Part shown: piece after piece, positions 6,397 through 54,857 of the stretch
How the letters are laid out: each line of letters opens with the position of its first letter
How positions within the stretch are numbered: position 1 is the stretch's first letter
Assembly: GCA_965202585.1 (NCBI GenBank)
Contig: OZ241828.1
Span: forward strand, 66,030,001-66,094,000
Length of the DNA: 64,000 bases
Source: Thalia democratica
Taxonomy: Eukaryota
Direction: 5' to 3'
Position numbers and translations under genes: made by a program
The notes under the pieces: model-generated
Databases searched by the model: none
What the model saw: the letters and a program-made list of their open reading frames with translations, nothing else
What the model was told of the DNA's origin: nothing

Positions 6397-7263
6397 ATGA
6401 ACAATCAGAGTAAAATCAAAAATTACAAGGTGAGCTAAAAATATTTTACATGACAAATGTTTATAAAGTTTAATAAAACAAAAATTAATTGATGTTATTT
6501 TAATTATATTTAGAAGACTTAAAAGTATTACTTTTTTCACTTAATTTTTAATTAAAACTATTATATTTCAAAAAAAAATAGTTAAAAATTTTGTTAGTCT
6601 TAAACACTGATTAATTCAAAATAAAAGCATTTCACTTCATAATTTAAAAACCGGTAATTAATACTGATAATACTTTAAACAACTTAAATAGTTTATATAA
6701 ATTTGTGAAACTTTTTTAATTGTTTATTTCAATATCAGGAGTTCAACGTAAAGTTAAAAGAAGAACTTGATACACATTACGAGAATTGGCAGAAAATAAT
6801 AGACAACAGAGTTGTTAATTTAAATTCGTGGTATGATTTCGTTGAAACTGCAGAAGCGAATAAGGCATATCTTGAAAATGAAATTCAAAAGACCCGTAGA
6901 AACCTTATCATAGAAAAACATTTGTGTGGAAAAAACTTAAGACTTTTGGAGAATCAACTTGATCAGTTTCAAGTTGAATTAAACAAAAGTTTTGACAATT
7001 ATTGCGACAGTATTTTTTAACAAGCAATTCCAATAAGAGTGCCCGGTATAGAGTTTTATGACTCAAATGAAAAACATGAACAAAGTTTGAGTTTTCAAAG
7101 AATTGAGCAGTTCGAAAAACTTAAAGTTGACGAGTCAGTTGTTGGTGATCAGTGTGTGGTATGTAAAGAAGACATTGAAATTGGTAGAAATATGATGCGT
7201 CTCGACTGTGGTGGTCCAGACATTTTCTGTCAAGTTTGTACAATTTATCAATTTTTACGTTAA
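6397..7263 (+). pseudogene. RING family copy 1, join(6397..6429,6739..7263); nonsense codon and truncated RING
   Basis: First exon MNNQSKIKNYK|GTGAG, acceptor ATCAG at 6738, phase 0. In-frame TAA at 7018-7020 where copy 2 has CAA. RING reads C..C...CGGPDIFCQVC and then loses homology: the His ligand and the last CxxC are missing. Confidence 0.85.
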
Positions 7264-7498
7264 TATAGTTTATACGTAATTGAAAAGATTCAAAAGTATT
7301 ATTTTTTAACTTAATTTGATAAAAGCAGTATGTTTTATTGAAAAATTACAAAAGTTTAAAATATTATTTTATAAAACGATGATAATTGCAAAATGAAAGC
7401 CGTTCACTATAAATTTTGATAAAACGGTAATTTAAAACTGATAAACAACTTAAAAGTTTTATATAAATGTGTAAAACGTTTTTTTTTTTTTTTTTCAG

Positions 7499-8056
7499 GA
7501 GTTCAACGTGAAGTTAAAAGAAAAACTTGATACCCAATATGAGAAATGGCAGGAAATAATTGACAACAGAGTTGTTAATTTAAATTCGTGGTATGAATTC
7601 CATGAAACTGCAGAAGCAAATAAGGAAATTTTTGAAAATGAAATTCAAAAGACCCGTAGAAAGCTTAAAATAGAAGAAAATTTGTGTAGAAAAAGTTTAA
7701 GACTTTTGAAGAATGAACTTGAACAGTTTCAAGTTGAATTAAACGAAAATTTTTACAACTATTGCGACAGTATTTTTCAACAAGCAATTGTAATAAGAGT
7801 GCCTGAAATGGACTTAAATGACTCAAATGAAAACCAACAAAAAGGTCTGAGTTTTCAAAGAGTTTAGCAATTCGAACAACTTAAAGCTGACGAGTCATTT
7901 GTTGGTGATAAGTGTGTGATATGTCAAGGAGACATTGAAATCGGTAGAAATATGGTGCGTCTCGACTGCGATGGTCAGCACACTTTTTGTCGAGTTTGTG
8001 TTGAAGGATGGTTTGCTAACCATAACACATGCCCAATTTGTAGGCATAAGTTCTAA
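7499..8056 (+). pseudogene. RING family copy 2: duplicated terminal exon with one in-frame TAG just before an otherwise intact RING
   Basis: Poly-T/CAG acceptor at 7498. Frame open to TAG 7865-7867 (CAG in paralogues), then open to CVIC...CDGQHTFCRVC...CPICRHKF-TAA at 8056. The upstream ~230 nt resemble the 3' half of the copy-1 intron; no first exon of its own was found. Confidence 0.85.
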
Positions 8057-11000: not shown

Positions 11001-13824
11001 ATATTTATCTAAAACAAGAATAATATTAAAATTATATAATCTGTTTTAGTTAATTATACTTTTAATTACAATTTCTCATCTTAATCTATGCATACATAGT
11101 CTGATTTTTAGTCTTAAATTAAGAAGTGAGTTTTACATGATAAACTTGAGTTGTTAAATAGTGTTATACTGTAATAAGCCTTTTTGAATTCTAAAGGTTT
11201 TTTATAAGTAACAGAGAGGGGGTCTTATTTTTTTAAAGTTAGCTTTATTTATAGATGTTTATCTCTACCAGAATTTTATTGACTAATCTTTTTAAAAAGC
11301 TTATTTTTAAGATTCAAAAAGTGCAAGTGTACTCTATTTGGTTGAATATCTTATAGAACAAAACTGCTAAAAATTGAGCGCTGAAAAACTAAAAGAGTAG
11401 AGTAAATGTAAGTTTTGTAAAATAGGACCTACGAAAATAGAATAATGAAAACGGCCTATTTAGAAGTTGAGTAATTTTTTTCTTAGTTACTTAGTTCATG
11501 TAACACTACCTTGATTTCAACACAATTAATAAACTCAGGGTAACTAAGGGCACATTAATTTTTGAAATTTAAGGAAAACACAGGCTAGTTTAAAGTTATT
11601 TTTTTAAAGTCAGAATGACTAAATTTTTATGATATATAATTCTATCTACTTGGAAATATCAGTGAAATTATAAGATTTTGAAAAATATAGTAGGACTTAA
11701 GACAGTTTGAAAGACCTTCTTAGGACTTTTTTGATACTTAAGAGTCGCAATCCTGAAAAAATCTGTAAGCTGATTATCAATTAAAATACTGTTTTAATAA
11801 AAAAAGTTGGTTTGTAACTAAAACAGAAAATACTTTTAATAATAAATTAATTTTATTTTTTTAGAAGTTTCACTTAATCAGACTTCAGAAACGCATTTAA
11901 ACATTTTTTAAAAACAAAAGTAAAGTAAGAAAAAATGTTTGTTTTATGTTTCATATTTGAGCATTGCAAAGGAAAAAATATTTACACACATAAATATCAT
12001 AGTATAAAGCCTACTTTTATTAGATCATGTTTAACTAAACTTTTAAAATGAGAACAAGTGAAATAATTTAAATGATATAAAACCTCTTTTGTATATAAAT
12101 TATTTTTTACAAGTAAATTATTTAGTTTTATTAAGTAACATTAAAATAAAAAAACTTTAACATCTAGTTTAAGATTGTTCATACCTTTAATTTTTTTTAT
12201 TTAGCCTTTTCAATTAAAATCAGTTTGCAAATTAGCATGAATTTTGCTTCTTAAGCATGCTCTTAAATGTCTCGACTTTGTATAAGATACAAAATATCTT
12301 ATTATTTAATTTCTGTTACAGCTTAATATAAAGCAGGGTTTCTAGAACTTCATAGTTGCCATCTTAGACAAAAATGAATCGCCCCTAACCATTTTTCAAA
12401 TATTAAAAGTAACTAATTTCATTTGTACAATATATATTAATGCCCTGATAGTTTAAATTTCTCACTTTTGTTGAAAGTTAGTTAAGTACTAAAATTAAAC
12501 CATTGAGTTATAATGTTTACAACTTTTTAGTTCAACATTTATATTTAGAAAATTATAGCAATTGTTGCAATTATAAACCTTAGCAAGAGTAAAAAAAAAA
12601 AACTAGTTATAGTAATATAGAGTAGTAACTTTTGTTTAACTAGCCTTAGAAAAGTGTTTAGCTGTTTGTTGTAAACTTCTTCCAAATTATGTATGCTACT
12701 TGTATACTTTATTTATTGATTTGATTTCTTAGTATGTAATTTTATTTTGATTTTATTGTTATAAAGTATACTCATGAAAGATTTAAATGTTGTGTAAAGG
12801 TTTTGACCACATTGGAAGTATTTTCTATAGTATGATGCTTTTCATATATTTAATAGTTTATATAAATAGTTTATTAGTTTAGTCTATTCTTTATATAAAA
12901 TATAATCAATTATAGTCATGCCTAATTTTTAAGTATTAAGTAACATCAATCTTAGTTAGGTTTCAGTTGTTATTTATTTATAATTGTTAATAGTATGGGT
13001 GTAAAATGTTACTACTTAATTTGATAAACAAAATTTCATTCCGTCATTTATGGTGGATTTAATCTGTAAAAATTACCATATAATTGTTTACTATTAAAAA
13101 CTATGTTATAATTGAGCTAAAAGTATAGTGTTTTAAAATATTTTAGGATGAATAATGTATATTATATGTTTTGACTTTTGAAAACAATACACAGAGATCT
13201 CTACTTCTAGAGGAAAGTTAATATAGCTTATTCCTTCAAGACTTCAATTAGTAAAATAAGTTTAGATCAAAGAGCTCTTCAGTGCTAAAATCTTTTAAAT
13301 TAAAGGTTGAATGTAAGTACGGACGAGGTCTTTGCCCGAAATTTAATTTATTTATTAACCTCTTCGAGGTAAAAATAATCTAAAATATATATACACGAAA
13401 TGTTTATTTCTTTTTTCTTTCAAAAGCCGTTGCTAGACTCTGTTTTTCAACGCAAATTGCTTTATTCTTTTTTGAATATCTTCTAATATTCACTACTTAA
13501 AATATTATATTTTTTTTAACTAACAACGTGTACCTGATTATTTCTAATTATATAACAACTTTTATGTCGCTATGTAGTGAAAATAAAATATTTTTGGTTT
13601 ACGTCTCCATCATCTGATTTTTTTTTTAAATTCCGGTTGTTTTAAATATATAGTTTTTCTAAATTTAGAAATATCTATTTCAGTTAGAAAAAACAAATGA
13701 CTGAAATAAACACTACCTAAAATGTTTATAAATATTTAAAAAAAGTATTGTTACAAACTTTGTTTAAAGGACTTAATTTCAATAACAGAAACTTAAACAT
13801 TATTATACTAAAAATACAGAAGAT

Positions 13825-14765
13825 ATGCCTCCTCTGAGTACACTCGAAATCTATAAGGTTAGTGAAAATAAAATACGAAGCAGGATTTTGATAAAAAACT
13901 AGCAAAATATTAAAAGTTAAATATTTTTTACAAGACTAGTAGTTATTTTACAAAAAATAATCAGTTTATTTATTTATTTAAACAGTTATTGCAATACTAA
14001 AATACGTAAACTGTGCTTCTAAATAACGTTAAACAAAATTTCTACGAGTGTAAGTATCTTAATTTGACAAACATATGTATACAAGTTAGTTTTTTACTAA
14101 TCAAATAAATTACAAATAAAACAGTGTACTACTTATTTTTTAAACTTATTTTTCTTAGTTTGATTATTTAAAGCTATCAAATTATAATTAAATTGATTTT
14201 TTAAATGCAGAACAACAACATGACGTTGAAAAGAAATCTTGATAACCAGTGCAAAGAATGGCAGCGAAAAATTATTAGCAGGGACATCAGAACAGGAGAT
14301 CTTGCAACTTCTCACACACATAAAGCAAAACTTGATAACAGAATCCAAGTACACCGAAGGTGTTTAGAGTCTGCAGTACTGAATGCAAGCGAACTAGAAA
14401 ATGAAAAACAGGAGCTTAAACTGTTAATTGCAGAGCTTGAAAAGTTTAAAGTACGACTCGATGTTGAGCATGAACTTTTTCATGACAGCTATCGTATAAG
14501 AATGATTCGACAGGCTATTGACGATTCTGTTACAGATGATAAGGATCAACAAGGATTGACTCTTCAAAGGGTGCAGCAATTTCAAAAATTTCAAGCTAAT
14601 GAGTCTCATGTTGGTAATCAGTGCGTGATATGTATCGGAGAAATTGAAATTGGTAGAAGTATGATGCGTCTCGACTGCGATGGTCAGCATACTTTCTGTC
14701 AACTTTGTATTGAAGGATGGTTTGCTGACCACAACACATGCCCAATATGTAGGCATAAGTTTTAG
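13825..14765 (+). CDS. RING family copy 3, intact, join(13825..13857,14211..14765), 195 aa; putative E3 ubiquitin ligase
   Basis: First exon MPPLSTLEIYK|GTTAGT, acceptor TGCAG at 14210, phase 0, 353-nt intron. C-terminal CVIC-x14-C-DGQ-H-TF-C-QL-C-x10-CPIC. AATAAA at ~14808. Confidence 0.88.
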
Positions 14766-26200: not shown

Positions 26201-26332
26201 TAACTGTATAGTTCTATCTATTTTGTAATAACAAATGTAAATTGTTTTTTAACTAGTGAAAACACATACACTACATAGATATTTATTTTTGAAATGGTGT
26301 TAACCAAGTTTAAAGCTCTATCTAATACTTAC

Positions 26333-26395
26333 AGGTCAAAGTAATTTTTGGCCAGGGGTGTAGCGTGGAGAGGGAAACTGACGCCTGCGTGACAC
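26333..26395 (-). other. Orphan 63-nt candidate exon on the minus strand
   Basis: Minus strand: long polypyrimidine acceptor ttttttttcttctttcctgtttttag, GC-rich body, perfect GTAAGT donor, length divisible by 3. Open in two phases (CHAGVSFPLHATPLAKNYFD or VTQASVSLSTLHPWPKITLT). Confidence 0.45.
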
Positions 26396-34794: not shown

Positions 34795-37700
34795 CGTTTA
34801 CTACAGTGCGTTCCGTCGCTGCCTAAAATTACTTGTATGTTCTCCTTTGATTTATCTTTAGCACTCATAATAAGATCCTAGTTAGTCACAACGCTGATTA
34901 AAAACTTTGTTAATTAAAATTTAAAATTGCTAGACTTGTGAACAACGCCTATTTTGTTTAACAACTACGTTTATTTAAAAACTACTTTATGTTAATTATG
35001 CTTAAGTTAATTAAGCTTAGATAGTTTTAAGAGCTGCTTGTACTAAACTAAAACCTTGTTAATATGTCAAACAAAAGCTTATGATATTCAAACTTATGTA
35101 AAATCAAGAGATGTTTACAAAACTACCAAATTCTTTTAAATATACAATAACGAACAGTACGAGAATCATAATAAAGCTACAAAAATAATACAAAAAGAAA
35201 CTCTCAAAATGAAAACAGAAGTTCTTTCTCGAATAGGCTGCATTAAAACTTAGTGTCGTTTCTCCACAACGATTCAAGAAGTAAACATAATGGATAAAAA
35301 ACTGATTAAATACGACTCTCTAAGGCTAACTGCAGAAAAGTATTATATATTCACAGATTTACTCTACTTAGCATTTTTAATTGAAAAACAGTTTGCAAAT
35401 AAGTATGAATCTTAATTCTTAAGCACGCTTTTAAAAGTTTTATTTCTGTATAAAATTCTAACTATTTTACAATTTGAATTTTGTTACAGTTTAATGTAAG
35501 GCAGGGTTTTAAAATTTTCATAAAAGGTCAACTCGGACAAAAATGAAAAAAAAACGAACCTAACCTTCTTTTAGATATTAAAACTAACCATTCATATTTG
35601 GTACAAATAACATTATATACTAATTATTAACTTTTTCTTAAAACATTTTGAAAGTTTGTTCAGTACTCAAATTGAAATGATGATTTGAAATGTTTATACC
35701 TTGTCCGTTCAAGATCAACATTTTGAAATTTTAATAACTTTTTTTAAAATATAGCTCAACAACAAATTATTAAAATTATTAATAAGTTGTTTAGTACTTT
35801 ACCTTCAGAGCTTAGGATAACGTTGAGCTTTAAATTTTTTAGATAAATAAAAACTAAAATAACACACTCCTATAAACATCTTAGTTGAAATATATTTTTT
35901 TTAACAAATTTGATTTTCTTTGTTATAATCTCAAAAGCACTTATATTAGACAGTTCAAAGTTGAACACTTATTAAAACTTCAATTTTGAATTTTAAGATT
36001 CAAAAGTAGTGTTTAGTTCATTATAACTATTAAAAGGTATAGTGTAATTGTAATTGACCGAAATATTTACAATCTATTAAATATTTTGTAGTCAATTATA
36101 ATTATCATAGGATCTTTTTATAATTTTGAATAATTTAGTCAACATTTTATGATTTTTAAATGTAGAAAAATCATTTTTTAAAATTTAGTAAGATTTTTAT
36201 TTTTGATAATATTATCATTTAAGTTAAATTTAAATTCAAAATTTAAATAGACTTTTTAAATACTTCAGTAAAACTTGTTTTGATAACATTTTATTATTTT
36301 AATAATTAACTTTTATTTATATTTTGTGGATACTTACTCAAATAAGCGGTTTTTACCTCATAATTTTATTTCTTGTACTTCTAAACTTTTATCATGTGCT
36401 TATTAATTTTTACTTTTTTTGTTTTCAAGCGTTTTTTTTAAGGTAAAGAAACTTTTGTTTAATTACTCTTATTATAAATATTTGTTTTGTTATTAAAAAT
36501 TGCTATTTAATCAGATATAAAAAGTTTTTAGATTTGTTAATGTCAATAAAAAAAGTTTGTTACAATATCTAAATCTTTATAAAAAATTTAACTTATAAAA
36601 ATAAGTTTTGTTTCAGTATTTATTTTAGCTAGTTCACTATTTTTATTATCATGGATTGTAAAAAAGAAAAATATCACAAAAATAAGCTGAAAGTTTTTCA
36701 AAACAAATTAAATAAATAAGTGTTTTTTTTTAGTAAATCAATTTTTTTTTACAGCTTACTAGACTAAAGCATAAAAAACAAATATGGAAAATCTGTTTAT
36801 CAAGCACTACATGGTTAGCTTTAAAATTTTCACATATTATGTTTGTATATAAAATAACTAAAAGTAAATCTATAGAAGAAATTTATACGTTGATATATTT
36901 TGCTTTCATTGTAAGCTTGAAAAATATTGTATTTTTCCTTAGTTTATAATCCTAACAATACGCTTTTTAACAACTTATGTTATAGACATATTTTTTTTAA
37001 AAATATACTAAATACGCGAAATGAATGTATTTTATTACTTATATTAATAAAAATGTAATTAAAACTGATAAACACTTTAAGCTTTTTTTTATTTAACTTA
37101 AAAGTTAAATTAAATTAAGTATATTTTATTATCAGAAGTTCATCATGAATTCTAAAGAAGAACTTGAGCACCAATACGAGTTATGGCAGTATACGATTGA
37201 CAGTAGGCTGGTTAATAAAAAATCGTGGTATAAAATCTTGGACTTTGCTGAAGCAAATAGGAAAAACCTTGAAAGAAAAATTCAAAAAGTTATTAGTGAT
37301 CTTAGCCTTGAAAAAAATGTGCATAAAGAAATTTTGAAAACATTAGAGGAACAACTTTATCAATCTAAAGTTGAACTAAACAAAAACTTTGACAATTTTT
37401 ATAATCAGGTTCTTCAACAGTTCTTTGAAATTGTGCCAAGTATAAGGAATATGCTATTTTCACCCGAAATACCCATTTATGACTCCTATTTTGAACAACA
37501 ACGAGGTCTGGCTATTCAGAGAATTCAGCAATTCGAAAGATTTCAAGCTGACGAGACATATGTTGGTGATCAGTGTGCGATATGCATGGAAGACATTGGA
37601 ATCGGTAGAAATATGATGCGTGTTGATTGTGATGGTCAGCATAATTTCTGTCAAGTTTGTGTTGAACGATGGTTTGCTAACCATAACACATGCCCAATTT

Positions 37701-40361
37701 GTAGGCATAAGTTCTAAAAACTTTTATTTTTTTACAAAACTGATCGTAAATTTTGATAAATAAAGCTTTTAAAGTTAGACTTGTTGCTTTTTCTATAATA
37801 AATTATTAATATTTTTATATCGTTAAATTTACTAATTAGTTTTAAAAACTGTCTAGTTTGCAAAGAATTTTTTGAAACCTAGTTCAACTTAATTTTCTTC
37901 ACCTTAAAATGTACCGGATTAATAATCTATATTTAAAAGTATTTTTACACTTAGCAAAAATTTCATTATATACTCTCTTTTACTTTTTTGAGTATATTTA
38001 TTAAAAAATGATTCATACTTGTTGTAAGCATCAAGTCGAATATTAGATTAAGTACTTTATATTTAAATGTTTTCACACTAGTTATAAAACATTTAAACAC
38101 ATAATATTTTACGAAATATCTTTATTGTACAATTAAGCTTACATTAAGTATGCTCTAAAATTAAATAATTCACTGCGCAAAAGTTTTTTAACTTAAAGTA
38201 CGTTAGTTTATCTTAAAAAATTCAATGCATTAAACATATTTAAGTTAGAGTTAATTTATTACCAAATAGGTCATCATCTTAACGCGCTATAACATTAAGC
38301 AGAGTTTTTCAGCCTAATTGTAATTCATTGAAATAAATAATATTTTTTATTATCTTTCTACATGTAAATACCTACTTACTTTACTTTCTAGCAAGCTCAT
38401 TTATTTTAAGCATTTACGTCAATTATTTTTATCAAGATTGTTGGTTTATCTCAGTTACTTTTAATTGTGATAAATCTTAATTTCTAGTTTTTAGCTTTCA
38501 GGTCAAGGTTTCTTAATAATAGCTTTTTATTAAATTCAAAAAGTATTCGCGTCAACATTTTACGTTTTTTTAAATTCAAAAAAATATAAAGTATAAAACA
38601 AGCATACTTTATAAACAGTTCATAGAATTGGTAGAAAAACACAAACTTTGTCAATAAAAAGTAAATTGAATCCTATAGGGTTTTCATTAAATAAAAAAAA
38701 CAACATCTTTGTCTTACGGCAGTTAAAACTTCTAAAAAAGCTTATTTTGAATTACTACTAATAATTAATTCTAGTAAAAATTAATCTTCTTTTTGCAAAC
38801 TAAACACTAACTAGTTTACATAAAGTTAGTCTAATAAGTTAGATTATGTTTATAATATAAAAACATTTATTTACTTCAAAAACTGACAGATAAATAGAAA
38901 GTGCACTTAAAACTTCACATTTTTATCAACTTATATTGTGAAGATTTTAGGTTTCCTTCAAAAAAAGTAACATTAATGAAGCATAAAAAAAAAGAGTAAT
39001 GTTACTTAAGAAAGGTTTAAATGATCGAACTTAAATCCATTGCTTAAATTAGTATTTGACGATTCATATAAATGTACTAAAAATTAGTACAACTAGATGA
39101 AAAATATGTTGGTTGGTTGTTATATTTTGCTTTATTTGTAGAAAGTATGTGTGTTAATTAAGTTTTGTAGATGCTGCTAAAAAAAAAATAATTAGAGTTT
39201 CGAGAAAAAAATAGTTTCATTTATTTTGTTAAAACTTGTACAACACTAGTTTTGAAATAATAAAAAAAGAAAACGATGAAAAGAAAACAAAATCAGGTAA
39301 AATATTACAGCTATATTTAGTGAAATTTTCAATACACTATTAAAAACCCCCTTTTATCATAAAATAAACAATAAATAACAAATTTCTTTACAAACCCCAG
39401 AATGCATAGAGTTATTATACAAATTTCCGTATATGGCACCTAAGTATTTTTTTATAATCTTCAAAACAAATAAAATATTATCAAAAGTGAGTGACATGTT
39501 CTCATAACCAACAAGCCTAAATTTAAAGTTAGCAACTCTTGCCTTTGCTGTTTTACTAAATATTTCCACTTTTTATCTAGAATCGCAAAAATATCAAACT
39601 TTTAAATTTCTAATTTAGACTGACATTTTTAGGTGTTAGTTTATAGTGATTGATTATTAAAATTTCTTCTACAAAAGTGTTTTAAATCCTGTAGGGTTCT
39701 CGCTATCTGTGTTCATATAGCAATTAATAAAAAATAGTAAGTTTTACTTACAGTAACTTTTAGTTCCAAACAGTAAGTTGTTATTAATTACTTAAAAATC
39801 ATTCTACTTATAGCTAAAGTTCTTTGTTTTACACAAACAATACAGAATTTATAAAAGTACGGCTAATTTTATTAATAACATAAATCTAATAAATAGATCT
39901 TAAACAACAGTTTTTTATCTCCCATTATGATCTTTAGATAATTTTTAAAAACAAAGTTTCTCCGTCCATTTTAAATAAAGTGATATTTATTCCATTTAGT
40001 TTTTCAAGTTAATTTTGTAATATCTGGATCTGAGATATTTTTAATGTTTATTTAAACAAGTAAATATCTGTTTAAAAAAATTTTCATTAGTTATAACGTT
40101 TTCAATAAGTAATACTTTGACGACTTGTTCTTTGATATAAAAACAATTAAACTAATAGATTAACTAAAAATCATACTAATAATAATTTGTGGAGTTATGT
40201 AGTTTAAAAATAACTATATCGTACTTAAACCTCACTAAAAAGATACAATAATCATAATACTTATGCATAGTTTTAGATGAGGCTTAAACATAAACACAAT
40301 TTTTTGTTGTAGTTCAAAGTACTAATTTATCATTTCTAAATTCTGTTGACTAATAACTATT
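34795..40361 (+). repeat. Unit A of a ~5.85 kb direct tandem segmental duplication containing RING copy 4
   Basis: Continuous colinear similarity with 40635-46229; anchor offsets 5840 (34801/40641), 5855 (37136/42991), 5870 (40261/46131). Confidence 0.95.
36784..37717 (+). CDS. RING family copy 4, intact, join(36784..36813,37136..37717), 203 aa; putative E3 ubiquitin ligase
   Basis: First exon MENLFIKHYM|GTTAGC, acceptor ATCAG at 37135, phase 0, 322-nt intron. RING CAIC-x14-C-DGQ-H-NF-C-QV-C-x10-CPIC. AATAAA at ~37759. Confidence 0.9.
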
Positions 40362-40634
40362 GACGGATCTATATATAACAGTTCTATTCTATCGCTTACT
40401 TCCGTGTTGGTTACTGTTTCTCTACTTTTACCAGACACCATAAAGTTTTCGTGATCCACACCCGCCTCGCGGTCGGGTGTGGGATCCGGGTCACCATATT
40501 GTCGGCTCTATCGACCGGCTTGCTCTGATTGACCGGTTTGGTCCACGTGCAAAGAGTGAGGATCAACGGCTGGGTTTGTCACTGCCTCGCTCGTCGATGC
40601 CGTGAGTCTTTTTTGGATACCCTGCTCTTTTTAC

Positions 40635-43600
40635 CGTTTACTACAGTGCGTTCCGCCGCTGCCTAAAATTACTTGTATGTTCTCCTTTGATTTATATTTA
40701 GCACTCATAATAAGATCTTAGTTAGTCACAACGCTGATTAAAAGCTTTGTTAATTAAATTTCAAAATTGCTAGATTTGTGAACAACGCCTATTTTGTTTA
40801 ACAACTACGTTTATTTAAAAATTACTTTATGTTAAATTTGCTTAATTTAATTAAGTTTTGGTAGTTTTAAGAGCTGCTTGTACTAAACTAAAACCTTGTT
40901 CATATGTCATAACAAAAGTTTATGATATTCAAACTTATGTAAAATCAAGAGATGTTTACAAAACTACCAAATTGTTTTAAATATACTAAAACGAACACTA
41001 CGAGAAACAGTATAAAGCTACAAAAATAATACAAAAAGAAACTTTCAAAATGAAAACAGAATGTGCTTTTCCGAGTGGCTGCAAACTGAGTGTCGTTTCG
41101 CCACAAAGATTCAAGAAGTAAACAAAATGGATAAAGCAACTGATTAATATAACGACTCACTAAGGCTAACCGCAGCAGAGTATTATATATTTACACATTT
41201 ACTCCATTTAGCATTTTTAATTGAAAAACAGATTGCAAATTAGCATGAATTTTAATTCTTAAGCAAGCTTTTAAAAGTTCTATTTCTGTATAAAATTCTA
41301 ATTATTTTACAATTTGAATTTTGTTACAGTTTAATGTAAGGCAGGGTTTTAAAATTTTCATAGTGGTCAACTCGGACAAAAATTGAAAAAAAAAACGAAC
41401 CTAACCTTCTTTTAGATATTACAACTAACCATTCATATTTTGTACAAATAACATTATATACTAGTTATTAACTTTTTTTTAAACCATCTTGAAATTTTTT
41501 CAGTACTAAAATTAAACTGATGATTTAAAATATTTGTACCTTGCCCGTTTAAGATAAAAATTTTACTAACTGTTTTTAAAATATAGCTCAACAACAGTTT
41601 ATAAAAATTATTAAAATTATTATTAAATTGTTTAGTACTTTACCTTCAGAGCTTAGGATAACATTGAGCTTTAATTTTTAAAAATAAATAAAAATTAAAA
41701 TAACACAATTCTATAAACATCTTAGTTGAAATATATTTATTTTAACAAATTTGATTTTCTCTGCTACATAAGAGTCTTTATTATAATCTCAAAAGCACTT
41801 ATATTAGACGGTTCAAAGTTGAATACTTATTAAAACCTCAATTTTGAATTTTAAGTTTTAAAAGTAGTGTTTAGTTCATTATAACTATTGAAAGGTATAG
41901 TGTAATTGTAATCGACCGAAATATTTACAATCTATTAAATATTTTGTAGTCAATTATAAGTATTATAGGATTTTTTTATAATTTTACATAAATTAGTCTA
42001 CAATTTATGATTATTAAATGAAGATAAATAATTTTTTAAAATTTAGTAAGATTTTTATTTTTAATAATATTATCATTTAAGCTAAATTTAAATTCAAAAT
42101 ATAAATAGACTTTTTAAATACTTTAGTAAAATTTGTTTTGATAACATTTTATTATTTTAATAATTAACTTTTGTTTATATTTTGTGGATACTTATTCAAA
42201 TAAGCGGTTTTTATCTCATAATATTATTTCTTGTACTTCTAAACATTAGTTTTTACTTTTTTTTTGTTTTTAAGCGTTTTTTTTAAGATAAGGAAACTTA
42301 TGGTTTATTATTCTTATTATAAATTTTTGTTTTGTTATTAAAAATTGCTATTAAATCAGATATAAAAAGTTTTTAGATTTGTTAATGTCAATAAAAAAGT
42401 TTGTTACAATCTTTAAATCTTTATAAAAAGTTTAACTTATAAAAATAAGTTTTGTTTCAGTATTTATTTTAGCTAGTTCACTATTTTTATTATCATGGAT
42501 TTAAAAAGTGAAATATATCACAATAATAAGCTGAAAATTTATCAAAACAAATTGAATAATGTTAGTGTTTTTGTTTAGTAAATCAATTTTTTTTAACAGC
42601 TTACTAGACTAAAGCATAAAAAACAAATATGGAAAATCTGTTCACCAAACACTACATGGTTAGTTTTAAATTTTTCTCATACTAAGTTTGTAAACAAAAT
42701 AATTAAAAATAAAGTCTATATAAGAAATTTATAAGTTGATATATTTTTGCTTTCATTGTAAACTTGAAATGTATTGTACTTTTCCTTAGTTAATAGTCCA
42801 AGCAATACGCTTTTAAACAACATATAATATAGACATATTTTTGATAAATACACTTAATACATGCAAAATGAATGTATTTTATTACTTAAATTAATAAAAG
42901 TGTAATTAAAACTTATAAATACTTTAAGCATCTCAAATTTTTTTTATTTAACTTGAAAGTTAAATTAAATTAAGTATATTTTATTATCAGAAGTTCATCG
43001 TGAATTCTAAAGAAGAACTTGAGCACCAATACGAGTTATGGCAGTATACGATTGACGGTAGAATGGTAAATAAAAAATCGTGGTATAAAATCTTGGACTT
43101 TGCTGAAGCAAATAGGAAAAACCTTGAAAGAAAAATTCAAAAAGTTATTAGTGATCTTAGCCTAGAAAAAAATGTGCATAAAGAAATTTTGAAAACATTA
43201 GAGGAACAACTTTATCAATTTAAAGTTGAACTGAACAAAAACTTTGACAATTTTTATAATCAGGTTCTTCAACAGTTCTTTGAAATTGTGCCAAGTATAA
43301 GGAATATGATATTATCACCCGAAATACCCATTAACTACTACGATTTTAAACAACATCGAGGTCTGACTATTCAGAGAATTCAGCAGTTCGAAAAATTTCA
43401 AGCTGACGAGACATATGTTGGTGATCAGTGTGCGATATGCATGGAAGACATTGGAATTGGTAGAAATATGATGCGTCTTAATTGTGATGGTCAGCACTAT
43501 TTCTGTCAAGTTTGTACTGAAAAATGGTTTGCTAACATGAGTACATGCCCCATTTGTAGGCACAAGTTTTAAAAACTTTTATTTATTTACAAAACTGATC

Positions 43601-46229
43601 GTATATTCTTATAAATTAAGCTTTTAAAGTTAGACTTGTTGCTTTTTCTATTATAAATTAATAATATTTTTATATCGTTAAATTTACTAATTAGTTTTAA
43701 AAACTGTCTAGTTTGCAGAGCCTTTTTTGAAACCTAGTTTAGCTTATTTTTCTACACCTTAAAGTATACTGGATTAATAATCTAAATTTAAAAGTATTTT
43801 TACAATTAGCAAAAATTTCATTATATACTCTATTTTATTTTTTGACTCTATTTAATAAATTTGTTTCATACTAGTTGTAAACATCTAGCCGAATATTAGA
43901 TTAAGTACTCTATATACAAATGTTTTCACACTAGTTATAAAATATTTAATTACATAATACTTCACGAAATATCTTTATTGTACAATTTAGCTTACATTAA
44001 GTATGCCCGAAAAAATAAAAAACTGACTGCGCAAAAGTTTTTTATCTAAAAGTACGTTAGTTTATTTCAAAAATCTAACAATGCATCAAACATACTTAAG
44101 TTAGAGTTAATTTATTACCAAATAGGTCATCATCTTAACGCGCTGTAACATTAAGCAGAGTTTTTCTGCCTAATTGTAATTCATTAAAATATTTTTTTTT
44201 ATTATCTTTCTACATGTAAATACCTACTTACTTTACTTTCTAGCTAGCTCATTTATTTTAAGCATTTACGTCAATTATTTTTACCAAGATTGTTGGTTTA
44301 TCTCAGTTACTTTTAACTGTGATAAATCCTAATTTCTAGTTTTTAGCTTTCAGGTCAAAGTTTCTTAATAATAGCTTTTTTTTTAATTCAAAAAGTAATC
44401 GCGTCAACTTTTCACGTTTTTTTTAATTCAATAAAATATAAAGTATAAAATAAGCATACTTTTTAAACAGTACACAGGGGTTAGTAAAAAACACAAACTT
44501 TGTCAATAAAAAGTAAATTGAATCCTGTAGGATTTTCATTAAATGAAAAACAACATCTTTGTCTTACGGCAATTAAAACTTCTAAAAAAGCTTATTTTGA
44601 ATTAATACTAATAATTAATTCTAGTTAAAATTAATCTTCTTTTTGCAAACTAAACACTAACTAGTTTACATAAAGTTAGTCTACTAAGTTAGATTATGTT
44701 TATAATATAAAAACATTTATTTATTTCAAAAACTGACAGATAAATAGAAAGTGCACTTAAAACTTCACATTTTTATCAACCTATATTGTGAAAATTTTAG
44801 GTTTCCTTCAATAAGAATAACATTAATGATTCTAAGAAAAAGAGTAACGTTACTTAAAAAAGGTTTAAATGATCGAACGTAAATCCATTGCTTAAATTAG
44901 TACTTGACGATTCATTTAAATGTATTAAAAATTAGCACAACTAGATGAAAAATATGTTGGTTGGTTTTTAGATTTTGCTTTATTTGTAGAAAGTAGTGTG
45001 TTAATTTAGTTTTGTAGATGCTGCTAAGAAAAAAAAAAAATTAAGTTTCGAGTAAAAAATAGTTTCATTTATTTTGTTAAAACTTATACAACACTAGTTT
45101 TGAAATAATAAAAAAAAAACGATGAAAACAAAACATCAGGTTAAAATTTACAGCTACATTGAGTGTAGTTTTCAATACACTATTTTAAATCCCCCTTTCC
45201 TTCATAAAATAAACAATAAATAACCAATTTCTTACTTACCCCAGAATGCATAGTGTTATTATATAAGTTTCCGTAAATGACACATAAGTATTTTTTTTTT
45301 TAAATCTTAAAAACAATTCAAATATTATCAAAAAAGAGTGACATGTTCTCAGAACCAACAAGCTAAAATTTAAAGTTAGCAGCTCTTGCCTTTGCTGCTT
45401 TACTAAATATTTCCACTTTTTAACTAGAATCGCAAAAAAGTGCAATATCAAACTTTTAAATTTCTACTTTAGACTGACATTTTTTCGTGTTAGCTTATAG
45501 TAATTGATTATTAAAAATGAATTTCGTCTACAAAAGTGTTATAAATCCTGTAGGGTTCTCCTCTGTTTTCATAAAGAAGTTGAAAAAAAAACCGTATATT
45601 TTACTTACAGTAACTTTTAGTTCCAAAAAGTAAGTTGTTATTAATTACTTAAAAACCATTCTACTAATAACTAGAGTTCTTTTTTTTACACAAAACAATA
45701 CAGAAGTTATAAAAAGTACGGCTAATTTCATTAATAACACAAATCTAATAAAAAAACCATAATTAACAGTTTCTTATCTCCCACAATGATCTTTAGATAA
45801 TTGTTAAAAACAAAGTTGCTCCGTCCATTTTAAATAAAAGGATATTTATTCCATTTAGTTTTTCAAGTTAATTTTGTAATATCTGGATCTGAGATATTTT
45901 TAATGTTTATCAAACAAACAAATATCTTTTAAAAATTTTTTTCACTACTTATAACCTTTTGAATAATTAATACTTTGACGATTTGTTGTTTTGATATAAA
46001 AAAGTTAAACTAATAAATTAACTAAAAATTATACTAATAGTATTTTGTGGAGTTATGAACTACTTGACAAATATTTCAAAGAACTATATTTCATTTCAAC
46101 CTCACTAAAAAGATACAATAATCATAATACTTATGCATAGTTTTAAATGAAGCTTAAACATAAACAGATTTTTTTAAAATTGTAGATCAAAATACTAAAT
46201 AATCATTTCTAAAATCTATAATAACTATT
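40635..46229 (+). repeat. Unit B of the ~5.85 kb tandem segmental duplication containing RING copy 5
   Basis: Colinear with 34795-40361 across intergenic, intronic and coding sequence. Confidence 0.95.
42629..43572 (+). CDS. RING family copy 5, intact, join(42629..42658,42991..43572), 203 aa; putative E3 ubiquitin ligase
   Basis: First exon MENLFTKHYM|GTTAGT, acceptor ATCAG at 42990, phase 0, 332-nt intron. The GTG at 43000 is an internal Val in this model. All eight RING ligands present. Confidence 0.9.
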
Positions 46230-46999
46230 AAACTTTAAAATTAAAATGCTTTTAAATACACAACAAAGATTTTATAGCGCTTTTAAATTAAAAATAAAAC
46301 AAACCTACTAAAACTGTAAGTGTATTAACTTAGTTTGATTTTATTGTTTTAATTTGTTGTTTTAAAAGTATAAATTTTAAACGTGTTTTTTCAGATAAAA
46401 TTTATCAAGTGCCTGCATTTTCAAAAATAACACTTTTTTAAAATTTGAATAAATATTAAATCTTTTTAGAAGAATATCGAAATTTAAGGTTTGATAATAA
46501 AATTAAACAACAAAACATATGTTAAACCTCTAAGATTATTACAAATTTGTTTCTGATAATTTTTTTACTCTGCTATTTTGTCAATTGCATTGTTTTTAAA
46601 TTTAAAAAGTACTGCGAATTGGTATTTGATTCAATACTTATTATCAAGTTTCGACTAAAAAAATCATCACTTCAATTTAAATATAAAAAGATGAACTTAA
46701 GTTTGAAACCAGTATAGTGATCTAACTATATGAGCTTTGTTTTAGCTAACAACATCACGTTTTATTTTACACTCTTGAATATAATCTAACTTTATTTGCT
46801 TTCGTAATATTTTATTATAAGCATACTTTATTTAGAAGAAAATAATTTTGAAACTAAAAATTATAAACTAAAAATATTTATTTATATAAGTATTTATAAT
46901 TTATTATCAACTGTATAAGTACCATTGTGCTTTTATTATTAAAAATATTGACTATAAAAAGTAATGTTTTTTTTTTAAAGAAATAATTCTGCATTAATT

Positions 47000-48530
47000 A
47001 AAAAATATTTGTTTTTTTTATCTACTAAGTTCTAACTGAATAAAGAAAAAAACAGTTTACGTGGTCTAAAAGTAAAAAAAAATCTTTTTTAATCCTGAAA
47101 AAAGTTTTAAAATTTTAGTAGAGCAGAAGCTTGACTATTTAAAAATATAAGACTAATGACTATAATACTAGTGCTTAATGTTAACAATTTAAGGAAAATA
47201 CAGTAGTTTTCTTAATTCTTTTAAGTCGGGATGATTAATTATTTTAAAATGTATACCTATCTATGGTAAAAGTGTTTAAATTTAGTAACTTTTTAAGGCA
47301 AAATTTCACTACATATAAACAATGTTGCCATAAAACCTGATATCCTGGAAAAACTTGGAGTTTGAAAATCTAGGCTAAAAACTTGAAAAAATCTGGACTT
47401 TTAAACAACTTTTGAAATTAAAAAAAAAATTATGTATTCACACGAAATATTTGTAATGTAGATAATAACTTTCGTCATCATCACCAAACCTTAAAGAAAC
47501 ACATTAAAAGTAACTTTTAGTATCTGTTCAATGTTGTTATACTACTTTTAACAGTTTATAACTTAATCTTAGCTTTAAATTAAAATTAGACCCAAAGTTT
47601 TTTACTTAAAAAAACCAAGAAAAAATTCTAAAATCTGGAAGAAGTTTCTCAAAAACAAGTTGCAACTTTGATAGTTTCAATTATTTGGTTATCTATTTTT
47701 TAATCGTTTTTACTTAAAACTAGTAGAAGAAAACTCAAAAAAACTCAAGAAATTTTTACAAATCGATCTGTGGCAACCTTGTTTAGTGGTTTTTTTTTTT
47801 ACAAAAATTAACATTATAACTTAATGATATCAAAATGTATAAAGTTTAATTCAGTTGTTAAAAAAAGAATATTTTGATAAAATTTTAATTTATTATCTTA
47901 TATTTTTAGTTAACTTTAGTTTAAAACAAACTTAATAAAAATTGTAGTAATTGTTGTATATAAGCTAATTTTTTTTGGAGATTTGAAGAATAAAGTACTT
48001 TTTTAAATGTAAACTAGTGGATGCATTAATTATTTTCTACAGTCTACTTAAATGTGCTTATTTTTCACTAATTTTCAGTAAATACAGAATAACCATAGAC
48101 AATAAGACTTAAAGTTGCCAAAAAAACTTGCAATCCTGAAAACAAATAGGAAAAACTCAAACTTCGACAATTTGTGCTAAAGAAAACACGAAAAGTTTGG
48201 AAATTCGCTTTAAAAAATTAAGCAAAAATCACTTTAAAACCTTAAACTATATTTAGTTTTCTCATTTAAAGTATTGAAATTTTTATTTATCACAAAACAT
48301 CTATCATTTATTTATTTATTTTCATTGTATTTTTGATGTCTTGGTCAAGTAGTTCAATTTAAACGATATTTTTTGTTACCAATCAAGCTTAAAGCTTTAA
48401 AAAATAAAAACAAAGTAAACAAAAAAGAAAATATTAAAATAAAAAACATACAGGATTCTGCTTTAAATAAGCAAAATTTATAAAGCTATGGCTCTTTAAT
48501 AGATAAAGTGTTTATTTACATAAGTTGTTT
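47000..48530 (+). repeat. Second copy of the composite repeat at 21480-23290
   Basis: Same ordered blocks as 21480-23290, visibly diverged. Boundaries approximate. Confidence 0.6.
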
Positions 48531-48689
48531 TTTTTTTAATTAAGTTTAGTTTGCTTTAAATAAGTTTATAAAAATAAAATCGTCAGTTTTATTTACATTT
48601 ACATCTTTAATATAAATTTTAAGCAAGTTCTCAGTGGCCACTCAGAATGTTTTTGAAGTTTTCAAAATCTCAGAATAGACCAAGTAAAC

Positions 48690-49710
48690 TCAGGTTTAAT
48701 TAAATAAGAATATGCAGTTGAAACGAAAATGTTGTAAACAAACTTTGTTCGTTTGAGTAATGTTTAAAAAAAATCTACAGCAAGATTATAGGTTAAAAAG
48801 CAAATTAATGTTTTCAGAATAACTTGATAAAACATTTCATCAATTAGAAATGTAAGGTTGAGTTTACAATAGTTTAACATTCTAAGAACAAACAGAAACT
48901 TTATTGGCTGCATATTTTATTAGGAAGTAAGTAATGCTTTAAACTTATACTTTTTCTACTAATTATATAAAACAAAATCTGTTATTTAAAAATTTTTTTA
49001 TTAGTTTTAGTTTTTTATTACTGTTTTTGCAAAAATTGCTGTTTTAAAGGCTGAACAATTTTTGCTGTTCTACAGACTTAACATTTGGTGATATTGATAT
49101 TAATTTAAAATAAAATAAACTTAACTAAAAAACAAAATTTATTTTAATCTTTTTTCAAACTTGTAAAAACGTATAAGTTACTCAACAAGGTATTAAATTG
49201 AAAATATCGTGACCAATAGATTTTGACATTTATACACTCAAACATATTTGCACACAAAGTATTTATTTTGAAAGTTAAGGAGAAACGTTTTTTGTTCAGA
49301 AAAATTTAAATGTTAATTTCTTTTTTTCACAAGAAACATATAGATATTATTTTACAATATTAATGATAAAAAAACTAATTCAGTGGCAAGCGATTTAAAC
49401 TAAATATTTGAAACTATTTGTTTTTTTTTCGCAAAAAATGACGTTTACACAAATATTTAGTTTTTATACGAACAAAAATTTTTTCAATTAGTTTTAAATT
49501 ATAACGATGTTAATTAATCGCTAATAGCTTGTTAAATGTTGCTTACCAGATTTATAGTTAGCAATTATATAACTATTTTTTTGTTTTAAAAAAATAATAG
49601 TTGTTAACCAACAAAATTTTTGTTTCGCAGCTAATGTGGGTCTGTAAACACAAAGAAATTTCTAAATATTGAGAGTGTATTTTTATTTAATTCAGTATAA
49701 AAAAGCTAGT
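48690..49710 (+). repeat. Old duplicated or dispersed sequence matching ~55980-56160 and ~57490-57960
   Basis: aagaatatgca.gt.gaaacg...cagcaaga.tataggttaaaaag...aacatttcat.aattagaa is shared with 55980-56150; tcaaacatatt...ttttacaatatt...gcagctaatgt...gagag.gtatttttatt is shared with 57490-57960. Confidence 0.65.
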
Positions 49711-50782: not shown

Positions 50783-51727
50783 ATGCAGCAGAGTAGAACT
50801 GATTATTACAAGGTTAGCTACAAATGTTACACATGATATATTTATAAAAAAAAATACACAGAGTAAAACAATTGATAATCGTTTTTACTCTGATATGTTT
50901 TTGCGTACACTGTATAGCTTCAAAAGTACTAATTTTTTCACCTCAGCTTTTTAACACAAACAATATGTTTTTAAACAATTTATAAAAAAATTTATCAAAA
51001 AATTAAAATTTTTATCAAAATAAAAGCTTGATAAATGAAAAACGATTATATTTACTACTTATATTGAAAAAATATATATAATTTATTAATACCTCAAAAA
51101 AGTTAAAAGTTTCAAGAAGTTATTTAGTGTTTTTTTTTTTATTAAGAGGTAAACCTGGGGTTGAAAGAAAAACTTGAGCACCAATAAAAGTCATTGCAGT
51201 ATATAATTGGCAATAGAGTGGTAAATAAAAAATCATGGTATAAAATTTTGGACTTTGCTGAAGCAAATAGGAAAAACCTTGAAACAAAAATTCAAAAAGT
51301 TCTAATGGATCTTAGCCTAGAAAAAAATGTGTATGAAGAAATTTTGAAAACTTTAAAGGAAAAACTTTATCAATTTAAAGTTGAACTGAGCAAAACCTTA
51401 GACAATTTTTATGATCAGTTTCTTCAACAGTTCTATAAAATTGTGCCAAGTATAAGGAATATGCTATTTTCACCCGTAATACCAATTAATGACTCCTATT
51501 TTGAACAACAACGAGGTCTGAATATTCAGAGAATTCAGCAATTCGAAAGATTTCAAGCTGACGAGACATATGTTGGTGATCAGTGTGCGATATGCATGGA
51601 AGACGTTGGAATTAGTAGAAATATGATAGGTTTTGATTTTGATGGTCAGCACAATTTCTGTCAAGTTTGTGTTGAAAAATGGTTCGCTAAAATGAATACA
51701 TGCCCCATTTGTAGGCACAAGTTTTAA
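50783..51727 (+). pseudogene. RING family copy 6, join(50783..50812,~51149..51727); disabled
   Basis: First exon MQQSRTDYYK|GTTAGC. In-frame TAA at 51185-51187 (TAC in copies 4/5), conserved Trp changed to Leu, third RING Cys changed to Phe (FDFDGQH). The 3' flank matches copies 4/5 up to ~51892. Confidence 0.85.
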
Positions 51728-51892
51728 AAACTTTTATTTCTTCACTAAACTGATCGTTAAATTTGTTAGTAAAAAAGCTTTTGAAGTTAAATTTGTTGCT
51801 TTTTCTATTATAAATTAAAAATATTTTATATCGTGAAATTTACTAATTAGTTCTAAAAACTGTCTAGTTTGCAAAGCTTTTTTTGAAACCTA

Positions 51893-53082
51893 ATCCTTAC
51901 CCTTAATGAAACGTTATCCGCATTTATAAAACAAATTCCTAACATAATAAATCAACGCCTAATAAACGATCAAGCACAGAAGAAAATTTTCTAAAGACTA
52001 AAGATGAATATGAAAAAATAATGAAAAAATGCGGATACGACAACAAACTTAAACTTGAAAAACCTGAGCAACAACCTAATAATGAAAAACACAAAAGAAA
52101 AAGAAATGTAATCTGGTACAATCCTCCTTTTAGCAATTCTGTAAAAACTAATATTGGAAGAAAATTTATAAATCTAGTCAAAAAACACTTCAATAAACAA
52201 AATCCGCTAACAAAAATTTTCAACAAACATAATATGCGAATAAGTTATTCGTGTATGGCTAATTTAGAGAATATCATTGAGGCACACAACTAAAAAATAT
52301 TAAATCAAAACTCAGGAATTCAAAGTCAATGTGGCTGTGCTGGTAGCTGTAAATATAATTTGAAAGGGGGTAATTGCCGTAAGAACATCGTCTATAAGGC
52401 CACAGTTAACTCTGGCGTTGAGACGAGGTGCTATGTCGGCTTGTGCTCGACTCAATTTAGATTCAGGCATGCCAATCATAAAAAATCTTTTAAAGTCTGT
52501 ATATATGATAATGACACTGAACTTTCGAAGTATGTTTGTGGCTTAAAGCGCAGCGGCATTGACTTCGAAATATGCTGGGAAGTTATAAAAAGAGCACAGC
52601 CTATAGCCGACGGCAATAGCCCAATATTTAGACTGTGTTTAAAAGAAGCATCAGCCGTTGTATATGCACTGAAAGACAGATGCCTAAACAAAAGAAGCGA
52701 GTTTGTATCGTCTTGTAGACATATAAAAAAGTCGCTTTTAAAGTTTAACAAGTTTTAATTTCATCTTAAAACAACCCAAAATTCAATTTGCATCTTAATT
52801 TTATCTTTATCTCTTTCAGTTATCTGTCGTAATATATAGTTACTCACTGAATTTATATGAATTTTTGCTAGTTTATTGTCGATTGGTAAATTAATTTTTG
52901 CACAAGCCGTTTTGCATGATTTTTGATAGTTTCAAAATTACGTCATAATCTATTTATGCAAAATTTTTTAACTTTCATTATTGATTTTGTTTTGTGCTTT
53001 ATTTTAAACTTTTTTTGAAGCTGATGAGTGAATAGTCACGAAACTCGAGTCCTTTGAGTTTTGCATCTTTAAATAAACCTTT
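51893..53082 (+). mobile_element. 5'-truncated Penelope-like retroelement: RT C-terminus, Cys-rich linker (Neptune-like), GIY-YIG endonuclease and 3' region; decayed
   Basis: ORFs 52021-52293 and 52360-52758 are in one frame split by a TAA. Motifs IWYNPPFS..VKTNIG, ISYSCM.N...HN, CGC...C, IVY...YVG, NHKKSF, TELSKY, LCLKE, LNKRSE..SSCRH match the typical PLE C-terminus. Followed by a hammerhead, AATAAA (53072) and (TA)n. Confidence 0.9.
53015..53058 (+). ncRNA. Type-I hammerhead ribozyme of the Penelope-like element
   Basis: Intact core CTGATGA 53021-27; stem II GTGA-atag-TCAC with a G-C closing pair; GAAA 53040-43; palindromic stem III ACTCGAGT; GUC cleavage site after C53051; stem I TTGAAG/CTTTGA with two G-U pairs. 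Confidence 0.85.
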
Positions 53083-53102
53083 TATATATATATATATATA
53101 TA
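53083..53102. repeat. (TA)n microsatellite at the PLE 3' junction
   Basis: Uninterrupted TA run. Confidence 0.95.
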
Positions 53103-54304
53103 TGTTAATGGGTTTTTTGTAGTTTTGGTAAATAATGATCGACAAATTTAATTAGATTTAAATATTTACTAAATTATATAATAAACAACAGCTTTATACA
53201 GCTATTTTGTTTATGAGATATTTTAACTCATATATTGTTCAGTAAAAATTTAGTTTATTAGACATATTTTACAAAAATTTAGAATTCAAAAGCTTCATAA
53301 ATAATATAACGTAGCAAAAATGAAGGTTTTTGTTCAGTAATTTAATTTAGAAGAAATTCGCTGATTTTAGTTTTATTATTTATTTAAGAAATTGTGAATT
53401 TAAAAAAAAATACTAATTGCTTTTACAAGATATATTACAAGTATGTAATACAAAGGTTTATTAGAACAATGATTTTAACTGCTTGTGTGCGTGGCTTTAT
53501 TTTACCTTAATTTAATATTTATTTAGGTTTAATTTTGCTAAAAAAGTATCTTTAGTAATGAATGCAGATATTTTATGTTTTGCTTTTTCTTGTTTAGTGC
53601 TATATTTTAGTCTGGTTAATTAATTTCGTATTTTTTTTGTATAGCAAAGTCTAACTCTACAGCCAAGTTTAGTATTTTACTTTAAATTTGTCTTGGTTAC
53701 TATTTTCCATTTTATTTTATATTGTCTGTTGTTGTATTCAAAATTCAAGTTCTATTGTACATGGGATCTACGGAAAACAGTGTTAAAAAAAAATACAAAA
53801 ATTACAAATCTTCTTTCACAAAATTAACCTAAGACATGCAACAAAATTTGGGTTTAAAAATGTTTCCATACTTTGTAAAATTTTTAATAGCAATTACTAA
53901 AACTTTTTCTAAATGCACAAATTCTGAATCCGATAACAAAACTAAAATCATCGTACTTAAAACGAAAATCACCGCACGAAAATCTTGATTATTTTTACGT
54001 CAAATAATTTTATAATTTTTAAGTTCTAATTCCGTGAAAAGTTTGATTTATTAACTTAAGCTTATATAAGGATTATTGAGATAGTTATATCTCATGTACG
54101 AAACAGCTGTATTAAACTGTTGTTTATTACATAGTTAAACATATAAATACGTATACAAATCGACTGAAAACTAATTGTCCTGCACTTGAATTTGTTTCTA
54201 GATTTAGACGATATTAACACAAACGTATAACTTTTATTAATAAAAGAAACTATTTTAACCTAAGAAAAATAAAATAGTTTAAAAGGACATAATAAAAACA
54301 ACAG

Positions 54305-54857
54305 GACATTAACATGACGTTGAAAAAGGATCTGGAAAACTTATACCAAAAATGGCATCAAGTTATTGATACCGAAAATTTTTACTTTAATGGGGTAAAC
54401 AACACTATTTATAGAGTGAAAGATAATTTTGAAGCAAAAATCAAAAATTATCGAGAAAGCTTAAAGGATGAAACAAAGGTTAACCATATTGCAAGTGTAA
54501 AGCAGGAACTCGACCTGCTTAGTTGATGAACTCCAATAATTTTTGGATTAATTAGAAGCAGAATTTGAATACTTTAGAGAAGAAGCTAGAAATTAATATC
54601 GTTGTTTATTCATCCAGGTCTTAGAAGTCACTAGACAACAACGAAATCTAACACCCGAAAGATTACAGCAATTTGAAACACCTGAAGCTGACGAGTCATT
54701 TGTTGGTGATGAGTGTGCGACATGCATGAGAGACATTGAAATTGGTAGAAATATGACCCGTCTCGACTGCGATGGTAAGCATACCTTCTGTCAAGTTTGT
54801 TTCGAAGAATGGTTTACTGACCACAACACATGCCCATTATGTAGGCATAAGCTTTAG
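54305..54857 (+). pseudogene. RING family copy 7, terminal exon only recognised; frameshift and three stops
   Basis: ACAG acceptor at 54304, then DINMTLKKDL. +1 frameshift near 54524; TAA at 54537, 54549 and 54594. RING still readable: CATC...CDGKHTFCQVC...CPLCRHKL-TAG. Confidence 0.88.

Follow-up and report, generated by a model that had tools for sequence, protein, structure and literature searches.

This report concerns an array of small genes encoding RING finger proteins in a window of 64,000 nucleotides from the salp Thalia democratica (C4:66,030,001-66,094,000 of the 802-Mb assembly, the whole stretch of DNA that was analysed; G+C content 20-29%). We propose that the intact copies, designated c3, c4 and c5, are probably compact two-exon genes for soluble RING-type ubiquitin ligases of about 200 amino acids, and that they belong to a large, lineage-restricted and expanded family. 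Exon 1 would supply the start codon and 10-13 residues, and exon 2 a helical bundle (here called the arm), a linker and the C-terminal RING. The RING would recruit a UbcH5-like E2 charged with ubiquitin, the bundle would select partners or substrates or else self-associate, and turnover of the arm over hundreds of paralogs would diversify the ubiquitinated targets. The family grows and decays by tandem and segmental duplication. We hypothesize that substrates are chosen by the arm and that the expansion reflects conflict; defence, self-recognition or genomic conflict might account for the size of the family.

Two-exon genes in the array

With the intact long open reading frames (ORFs) as queries, tblastn located exactly seven copies in the window, all on the + strand, and no further matches. 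Three (c3, c4 and c5) are intact and four (c1, c2, c6 and c7) are broken by lesions which, traced frame by frame, all differ. The first-pass annotation, made from the letters of the window, had counted the copies and divided them in the same way; its starting coordinate, 6397, corresponds to exon 1 of c1. The exons are as follows.

6397..6429, + strand: c1 exon 1, MNNQSKIKNYK, donor GTGAGC; more than 19 paralogs have a first exon of this length and phase that also ends in NYK
6739..7263, + strand: c1 exon 2, pseudogene; TAA at 7018, RING cut by TAA at 7261 after the sixth ligand, ligand His lost
7499..8056, + strand: c2 exon 2, pseudogene without an exon 1 of its own; TAG at 7865
13825..13857, + strand: c3 exon 1, MPPLSTLEIYK, donor GTTAGT
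14211..14765, + strand: c3 exon 2, intact, 184 amino acids plus stop; AATAAA at 14809
36784..36813, + strand: c4 exon 1, MENLFIKHYM, donor GTTAGC
37136..37717, + strand: c4 exon 2, intact, 193 amino acids plus stop; AATAAA at 37759
42629..42658, + strand: c5 exon 1, MENLFTKHYM, donor GTTAGT
42991..43572, + strand: c5 exon 2, intact; GTG at 43000 is an internal Val
50783..50812, + strand: c6 exon 1, MQQSRTDYYK, donor GTTAGC
51146..51727, + strand: c6 exon 2, pseudogene; TAA at 51185, Trp17 changed to Leu, third zinc Cys changed to Phe
53836..53874, + strand: c7, candidate degenerate exon 1 with a weak donor (GTAAAA); uncertain
54305..54857, + strand: c7 exon 2, pseudogene; frameshift near 54517, then TAA at 54537, 54549 and 54594

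Each gene is predicted to consist of two exons, a first exon of 10-13 codons (ATG, phase 0) followed by exon 2. In the DNA alignment of the seven copies, the apparent ATG of the long ORF follows a pyrimidine tract and CAG at a distance of nine bases, and AATAAA is conserved about 45 nt past the stop. The supposed start position is occupied by M, V, L, I or K across the paralogs, and coding conservation extends over the three codons that precede it; what looked like the start codon of the long ORF is therefore an internal hydrophobic residue. The start itself appears to lie in a mini-exon some 320-350 nt before the acceptor, found in c1, c3, c4, c5 and c6 as an ATG with 10-11 codons in phase 0 and a strong donor (GTTAGT, GTTAGC or GTGAGC). 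Such an ATG mini-exon, of 10-13 codons and 200-420 nt upstream, occurs in more than 19 divergent paralogs and in one Tara contig of another species, typically as M..Q..L.NYK followed by the donor GTTAGT, the end being (N/D)YK-GTTAGT. The acceptor of c6 (AAG/G) is a variant used by other paralogs too. Copy c2 has no exon 1 because the 0.77-kb tandem unit from which it arose starts downstream of c1 exon 1, and c7 has lost the G of the GL motif before the RING and retains the RING ligands. This gene model corrects the annotation, as calls based upon ORFs begin at the wrong Met or GTG and misjudge which copies are intact. Loss of the c5 start codon (ATG to GTG) was considered as a further lesion and was ruled out by the discovery of the upstream exon.

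Two observations were made around these starts. At 37145, the first base of the former ATG of c4, c4-like contigs of related samples have G instead of A; this fits an internal Met/Val position, and the contigs may derive from a paralog. In addition, the exon 1 ATG of c1, c3, c4 and c5 is preceded, at 30-45 nt, by a pyrimidine tract and ACAG, which may be a candidate acceptor for a spliced leader or for an intron in the 5' untranslated region. These regions are listed below.

6350-6396: pyrimidine tract and ACAG upstream of c1 exon 1
13780-13824: the same upstream of c3 exon 1
36740-36783: the same upstream of c4 exon 1
42585-42628: the same upstream of c5 exon 1

Contigs from four sequencing runs were DNA-like and spanned the whole 5 kb of the locus. 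A different kind of contig came from JGI sample 3300019144 (L072:1-2440). It is free of introns and encodes a 743 amino acid protein (P0086; that of the sister contig is P0115) in which a GH1 glycosidase frame, carrying a signal peptide, is fused to the arm and RING. In the present genome at least five exons (C4:78.473-78.479 Mb) encode the GH1 part; since the same part is contiguous in L072, this contig has the appearance of a spliced transcript. It resembles the genomic paralogs L028 and L029 (87.7%) from the CAG of the predicted acceptor of exon 2 onwards, which suggests that exon 2 is transcribed and its acceptor used in a close relative. The GH1-RING fusion could have come about by exon capture or by read-through splicing inside a RING cluster.

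The RING domain and the helical arm

Protein searches and structure models used exon 2 or its parts. The RING matches zf-RING_2 (PF13639) with 46.9 bits against a Pfam cut-off of 27.3 and has the spacing C-x2-C-x14-C-x3-H-x2-C-x2-C-x10-C-x2-C. In a family alignment of 51 sequences all eight zinc ligands (C147, C150, C165, H169, C172, C175, C186 and C189) are invariant, as are the E2-contact residues W179 and P187; I149 and the linchpin R190 are at least 90% conserved. Upstream of the domain L125, F133 and F136 are conserved, in agreement with the first-pass annotation, which had singled out the RING and a preceding GL...QR.QQF segment as the constant part of the copies. At the fifth ligand position an invariant Cys (C172) takes the place of His, and the third ligand Cys and the fourth, His, are spaced by three residues (CDGQH). 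By its ligands this RING is a C3HC4 variant within an otherwise RING-H2 group; His at both the fourth and fifth positions (C3H2C3) is not encountered.

Between the family profile and RLIM the alignment extends for 77 residues, through an acidic run and the GLT..QI..L motif, and on this basis the pre-RING GL..QRI..F segment is identified as the known GLT..QI..L extension of RLIM/Arkadia/RNF38-type RINGs. It was modelled as a helix and strand at 127-137 with a high predicted local distance difference test score (pLDDT). In Foldseek the modelled RING superposes on those of RNF12/RLIM, RMR1, RNF13, RNF38 and RNF165, the best match being the RNF12 RING bound to its E2 (RNF12-Ube2d2; TM-score 0.88 at 1.2 Å). 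The RING retains every feature expected of an active E3, and ligase activity is predicted.

The remainder of exon 2 is helical. AlphaFold2, run on c4 exon 2 with the 51 family sequences, gave a model with pLDDT 83 (82.6 for the arm alone) in which helices 2-22, 31-57 and 64-107 form an up-down-up three-helix bundle of about 107 amino acids. Residues 109-121 are disordered, after which comes the RING, preceded by the short helix and strand; the linker between arm and RING is short and often acidic. The bundle is amphipathic, and the model contains no transmembrane segment. The short, hydrophilic exon 1 peptides hold no signal peptide. Only the RING scores above threshold in Pfam, with nothing for the arm, and the earlier statement that the copies carry no membrane segment or other domain stands.

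Sequence identity between arms is 24% for c3 and c4, with only L10, W17 and L81 near-invariant, and about 42% for c1/c2 against c4-c6. The first-pass view that the arms share little beyond L....WQ..I is therefore apt for the former pair and overstated for the latter groups. Comparison with PDB profiles yielded compositional matches only. Foldseek found generic bundles alone (best E-value 0.22), VIA-align returned a flat list of unrelated bundles (Z up to about 12, below the bar of the tool for helical bundles), and the ESM Atlas gave no usable match. Spectrin repeat, Habc, BAG and GAT showed neither a profile match above cut-off nor an outstanding fold match to the arm. When a profile of 40 arms was searched against 1.84 billion proteins, 49 matches were obtained; those of interest are short, unnamed proteins from marine metagenomes in which the RING is at the C terminus, and the few named ones are unrelated coiled-coil proteins. 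By fold and profile the arm matches no known conserved family.

Family size, duplication and selection

The seven copies are a small part of the family. A degenerate DNA pattern for CDGQHxFC matches the 802-Mb genome at 297 places and its reversed control at 2, and a protein search of the genome gave 1540 first-look candidates. All 150 of those that were scored fell below E=1e-26, and about 120 of the 150 have stop-free open frames of at least 157 amino acids. In DNA runs of related samples, contigs covering the RING bin reach a summed depth 25-50x that of the flanks.

Duplication is evident on several scales. A tandem 0.77-kb unit (6508-7239 / 7279-7999) gave rise to c2, and c4 and c5 lie in larger units:

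34789-40361 and 40629-46229, no strand: two tandem 5.6-kb duplication units carrying c4 and c5, 89.8% identical

At C4:62.90-62.94 Mb, 3.1 Mb from the array, the copies recur in the same order (c1'-c2'-c3'-c4', with three c4-like copies), and the c1-like member (L016, C4:62.8995 Mb) shares the RING truncation of c1. Because both gene order and truncation are repeated there, the whole array was duplicated en bloc.

In a tree of 56 members, c4, c5 and c6 share a clade with copies located on contig C1274 and at C4:62.93-62.94 Mb. Copies c1 and c2 form the sister group of this clade, and the Tara contig L031 falls inside the same larger clade; c3 stands with L054 (C4:62.907 Mb) and L019, and c7 stands alone. 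On this tree the seven copies represent three or four old subfamilies, mixed in the array, and not a single local radiation. The first-pass annotation had treated the array as a seven-gene family, which must be abandoned in favour of at least about 300 loci genome-wide; its description of birth and death is upheld by the tandem and segmental duplications and by frequent pseudogenisation. The genome-wide count and the tree are among the checks it had proposed.

Two other clusters were encountered. The unplaced contig C1274 (1-24000) bears five c4-like copies at a spacing of about 5.8 kb; one of these shares 97% identity with c5 and another 95% with c4, and the contig may be an alternative haplotype or copy-number variant of the c4-c6 stretch. 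At C4:21280000-21730000 there is a dense cluster of about 40 family members of a 170 amino acid type, arranged in two inverted arms (- strand at 21.28-21.51 Mb, + strand at 21.59-21.73 Mb).

Could the copies be the cargo or by-products of a mobile element, their number reflecting transposition rather than a function for the host? The genome is rich in repeats, copies are spread over many chromosomes, and a Penelope-like ORF adjoins c6 (52021-52758). Nevertheless, we consider this highly unlikely, as the arrays are built from duplications of unit length and from the en-bloc copy with its gene order preserved, terminal repeats or a transposase do not accompany the gene, and both the spliced two-exon structure and the constraint on the RING described below point to selection of the host type.

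The interval 52021-52758 beside c6 holds two + strand ORFs, one with VIWYNPPFS, and methyltransferase-like Pfam matches there are weak (E=0.002, below cut-off). Several unclassified dispersed repeats of 150-1200 nt and 68-75% identity lie between the RING genes, at 17914-26677 and 46082-49704; an example is the pair 21457-22596 and 46967-48142. No RNA families were found in the window at Rfam gathering scores.

Rates of nonsynonymous to synonymous change (dN/dS, omega) were estimated with custom GY94/F3x4 likelihood code, adopted after NG86 gave unclear results. Pooled over sixteen independent paralog pairs, omega is 0.69 for the arm (95% confidence interval 0.62-0.77; below 1 at p=2e-5) and 0.27 for the GL segment and RING (0.22-0.33; below 1 at p=1e-22), and the two differ at p=3e-9. 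The arm thus evolves faster than the RING and is on average under purifying selection, and with both values below 1 the family is not in neutral decay. Estimates by domain had been proposed by the first-pass annotation, and they reject neutral decay of all copies. Among the pseudogenes, the c6 branch has omega 1.44, and pairs of pseudogenes are not significantly below 1. At the present base composition a random frame of 190 codons would be open with a probability of 2e-8.

Within the c4 clade (nine intact copies) the RING has omega 0.33-0.41 (p about 0.015) and the arm about 0.9, with few changes of any kind there. Model M2a is preferred to M1a in this clade (likelihood ratio test 16.4, p=3e-4). 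Of the candidate sites, 4 and 25 are in the arm, and 116, 117, 126 and 178 are spread over the linker, the pre-RING segment and the helix of the RING. We regard this signal as a lead only, since gene conversion among tandem copies can mimic it. The idea that the family varies its arm survives in part: the arm does diverge faster than the RING, but its average is purifying and four of the six candidate sites lie outside the arm core.

These figures bear on a simpler account, in which the bundle is a scaffold or self-association module only, its divergence is drift under weak constraint, and the copies are redundant or decaying. An arm omega below 1, the absence of positive selection focused on the arm, the generic fold of the bundle and the death of four of the seven copies in the window would all suit it. 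Against it, hundreds of open frames are retained despite about 75% divergence of the arm, the L10, W17 and L81 core is kept in all subfamilies, and old subfamilies persist between species, L031 being nested in one. We judge this account possible, though clearly less probable than our proposal.

Several points weigh against our proposal. The fold of the arm is only generic, so that its role as a binding module is one that we infer. In the c4 clade as a whole, omega (0.64) does not fall significantly below 1 (p=0.066). That c3, c4 and c5 are transcribed, with exon 1 joined to exon 2, is a prediction; the only intron-free contig, L072, is the GH1 fusion, belongs to another subfamily and another organism, and is silent on these three genes. 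It might accordingly be argued that the intact copies are silent relics, recent duplicates not yet hit by stops: their transcription is a prediction, the c4 clade fails to depart from neutrality overall, and the poly(A) signal of c5 is weakened. We find this improbable. Between c3 and L054 omega is 0.32, and the RING part of c3 compared with L054 and L019 gives significant values of 0.10-0.28; the pooled analysis rejects omega=1 in arm and RING alike. Exon 2 is free of indels between c3 and L054, whereas their 353-nt intron has 42 gapped positions, and exon 1, donor and acceptor are retained in c3, c4 and c5. The flanks of this pair are uneven (86% identical on the 5' side and 95% on the 3' side) and unusable as a neutral yardstick.

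Known relatives and the place of the family

The closest RINGs belong to RLIM/RNF12, RNF6, Arkadia/RNF111, ARK2C/RNF165 and RNF38/44. In these proteins too the RING is C-terminal and follows the same pre-RING segment, in many cases with an acidic run in front of it, and the E2-contact Ile, Trp and Pro and the linchpin Arg are shared. They differ in that their fifth ligand is His and not Cys, in the spacing of the third and fourth ligands (three residues in the family described here), in their long disordered N-terminal regions where our proteins have only about 200 amino acids with a three-helix bundle, and in occurring as one or two paralogs instead of hundreds.

Among large RING expansions, the TRIM proteins of vertebrates, such as the primate TRIM reservoir (PMC3228819), are alike as fast-turnover tandem clusters of RING E3s in which the catalytic RING is constant, other parts are helical and one part is more variable. 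In TRIM proteins, however, the RING is N-terminal and is followed by a B-box, a long antiparallel coiled coil and usually a PRY-SPRY; compared with this TRIM/RBCC plan, the RING here is C-terminal and neither B-box nor SPRY has a Pfam match. Plant ATL RING-H2 proteins likewise make up a large group of small ligases whose RING follows a GL(D) motif, and the EL5 and RMR1 RINGs are among the matches to the family RING. The proteins described here lack the transmembrane helix that ATL proteins have at the N terminus, and their RING is not a true RING-H2. Grape phylloxera reportedly has an expansion of secretory RING finger effectors, proteins with signal peptides that are thought to be secreted into the host. 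That expansion, too, is very large and lineage-specific, consists of small RING proteins and lies in an invertebrate genome that is AT-rich; it differs in that the exon 1 peptides here are short, hydrophilic and without a signal peptide.

In the literature searched the family is not described, broader searches giving only analogues (TRIMs and phylloxera RING effectors), and the salp/tunicate genome papers examined, PMC13746493 among them, do not mention RING. Relatives outside the genome are confined to marine metagenome contigs (Tara Oceans). The sequence comparisons thus support a lineage-restricted, unnamed family, and the suggestion of the first-pass annotation that it is lineage-specific and possibly undescribed is strengthened both by the silence of those papers and by the 49 arm matches in 1.84 billion proteins.

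A bolder picture, which we put forward with considerable doubt, is that of a thaliacean germline repertoire of hundreds of single-chain E3s made from a portable 3' exon comprising a three-helix arm and an RLIM-like RING. The arms would then provide diversified intracellular recognition of viruses, mobile elements or non-self, and the exon could be captured by splicing, as in the GH1-RING contig. Salps are ecologically important and their gene content has been little studied. With at least 300 members the family would rank among the largest gene families of the genome, and since it unites a constant catalytic module with a fast-evolving helical one, it is naturally a candidate for a system driven by conflict.

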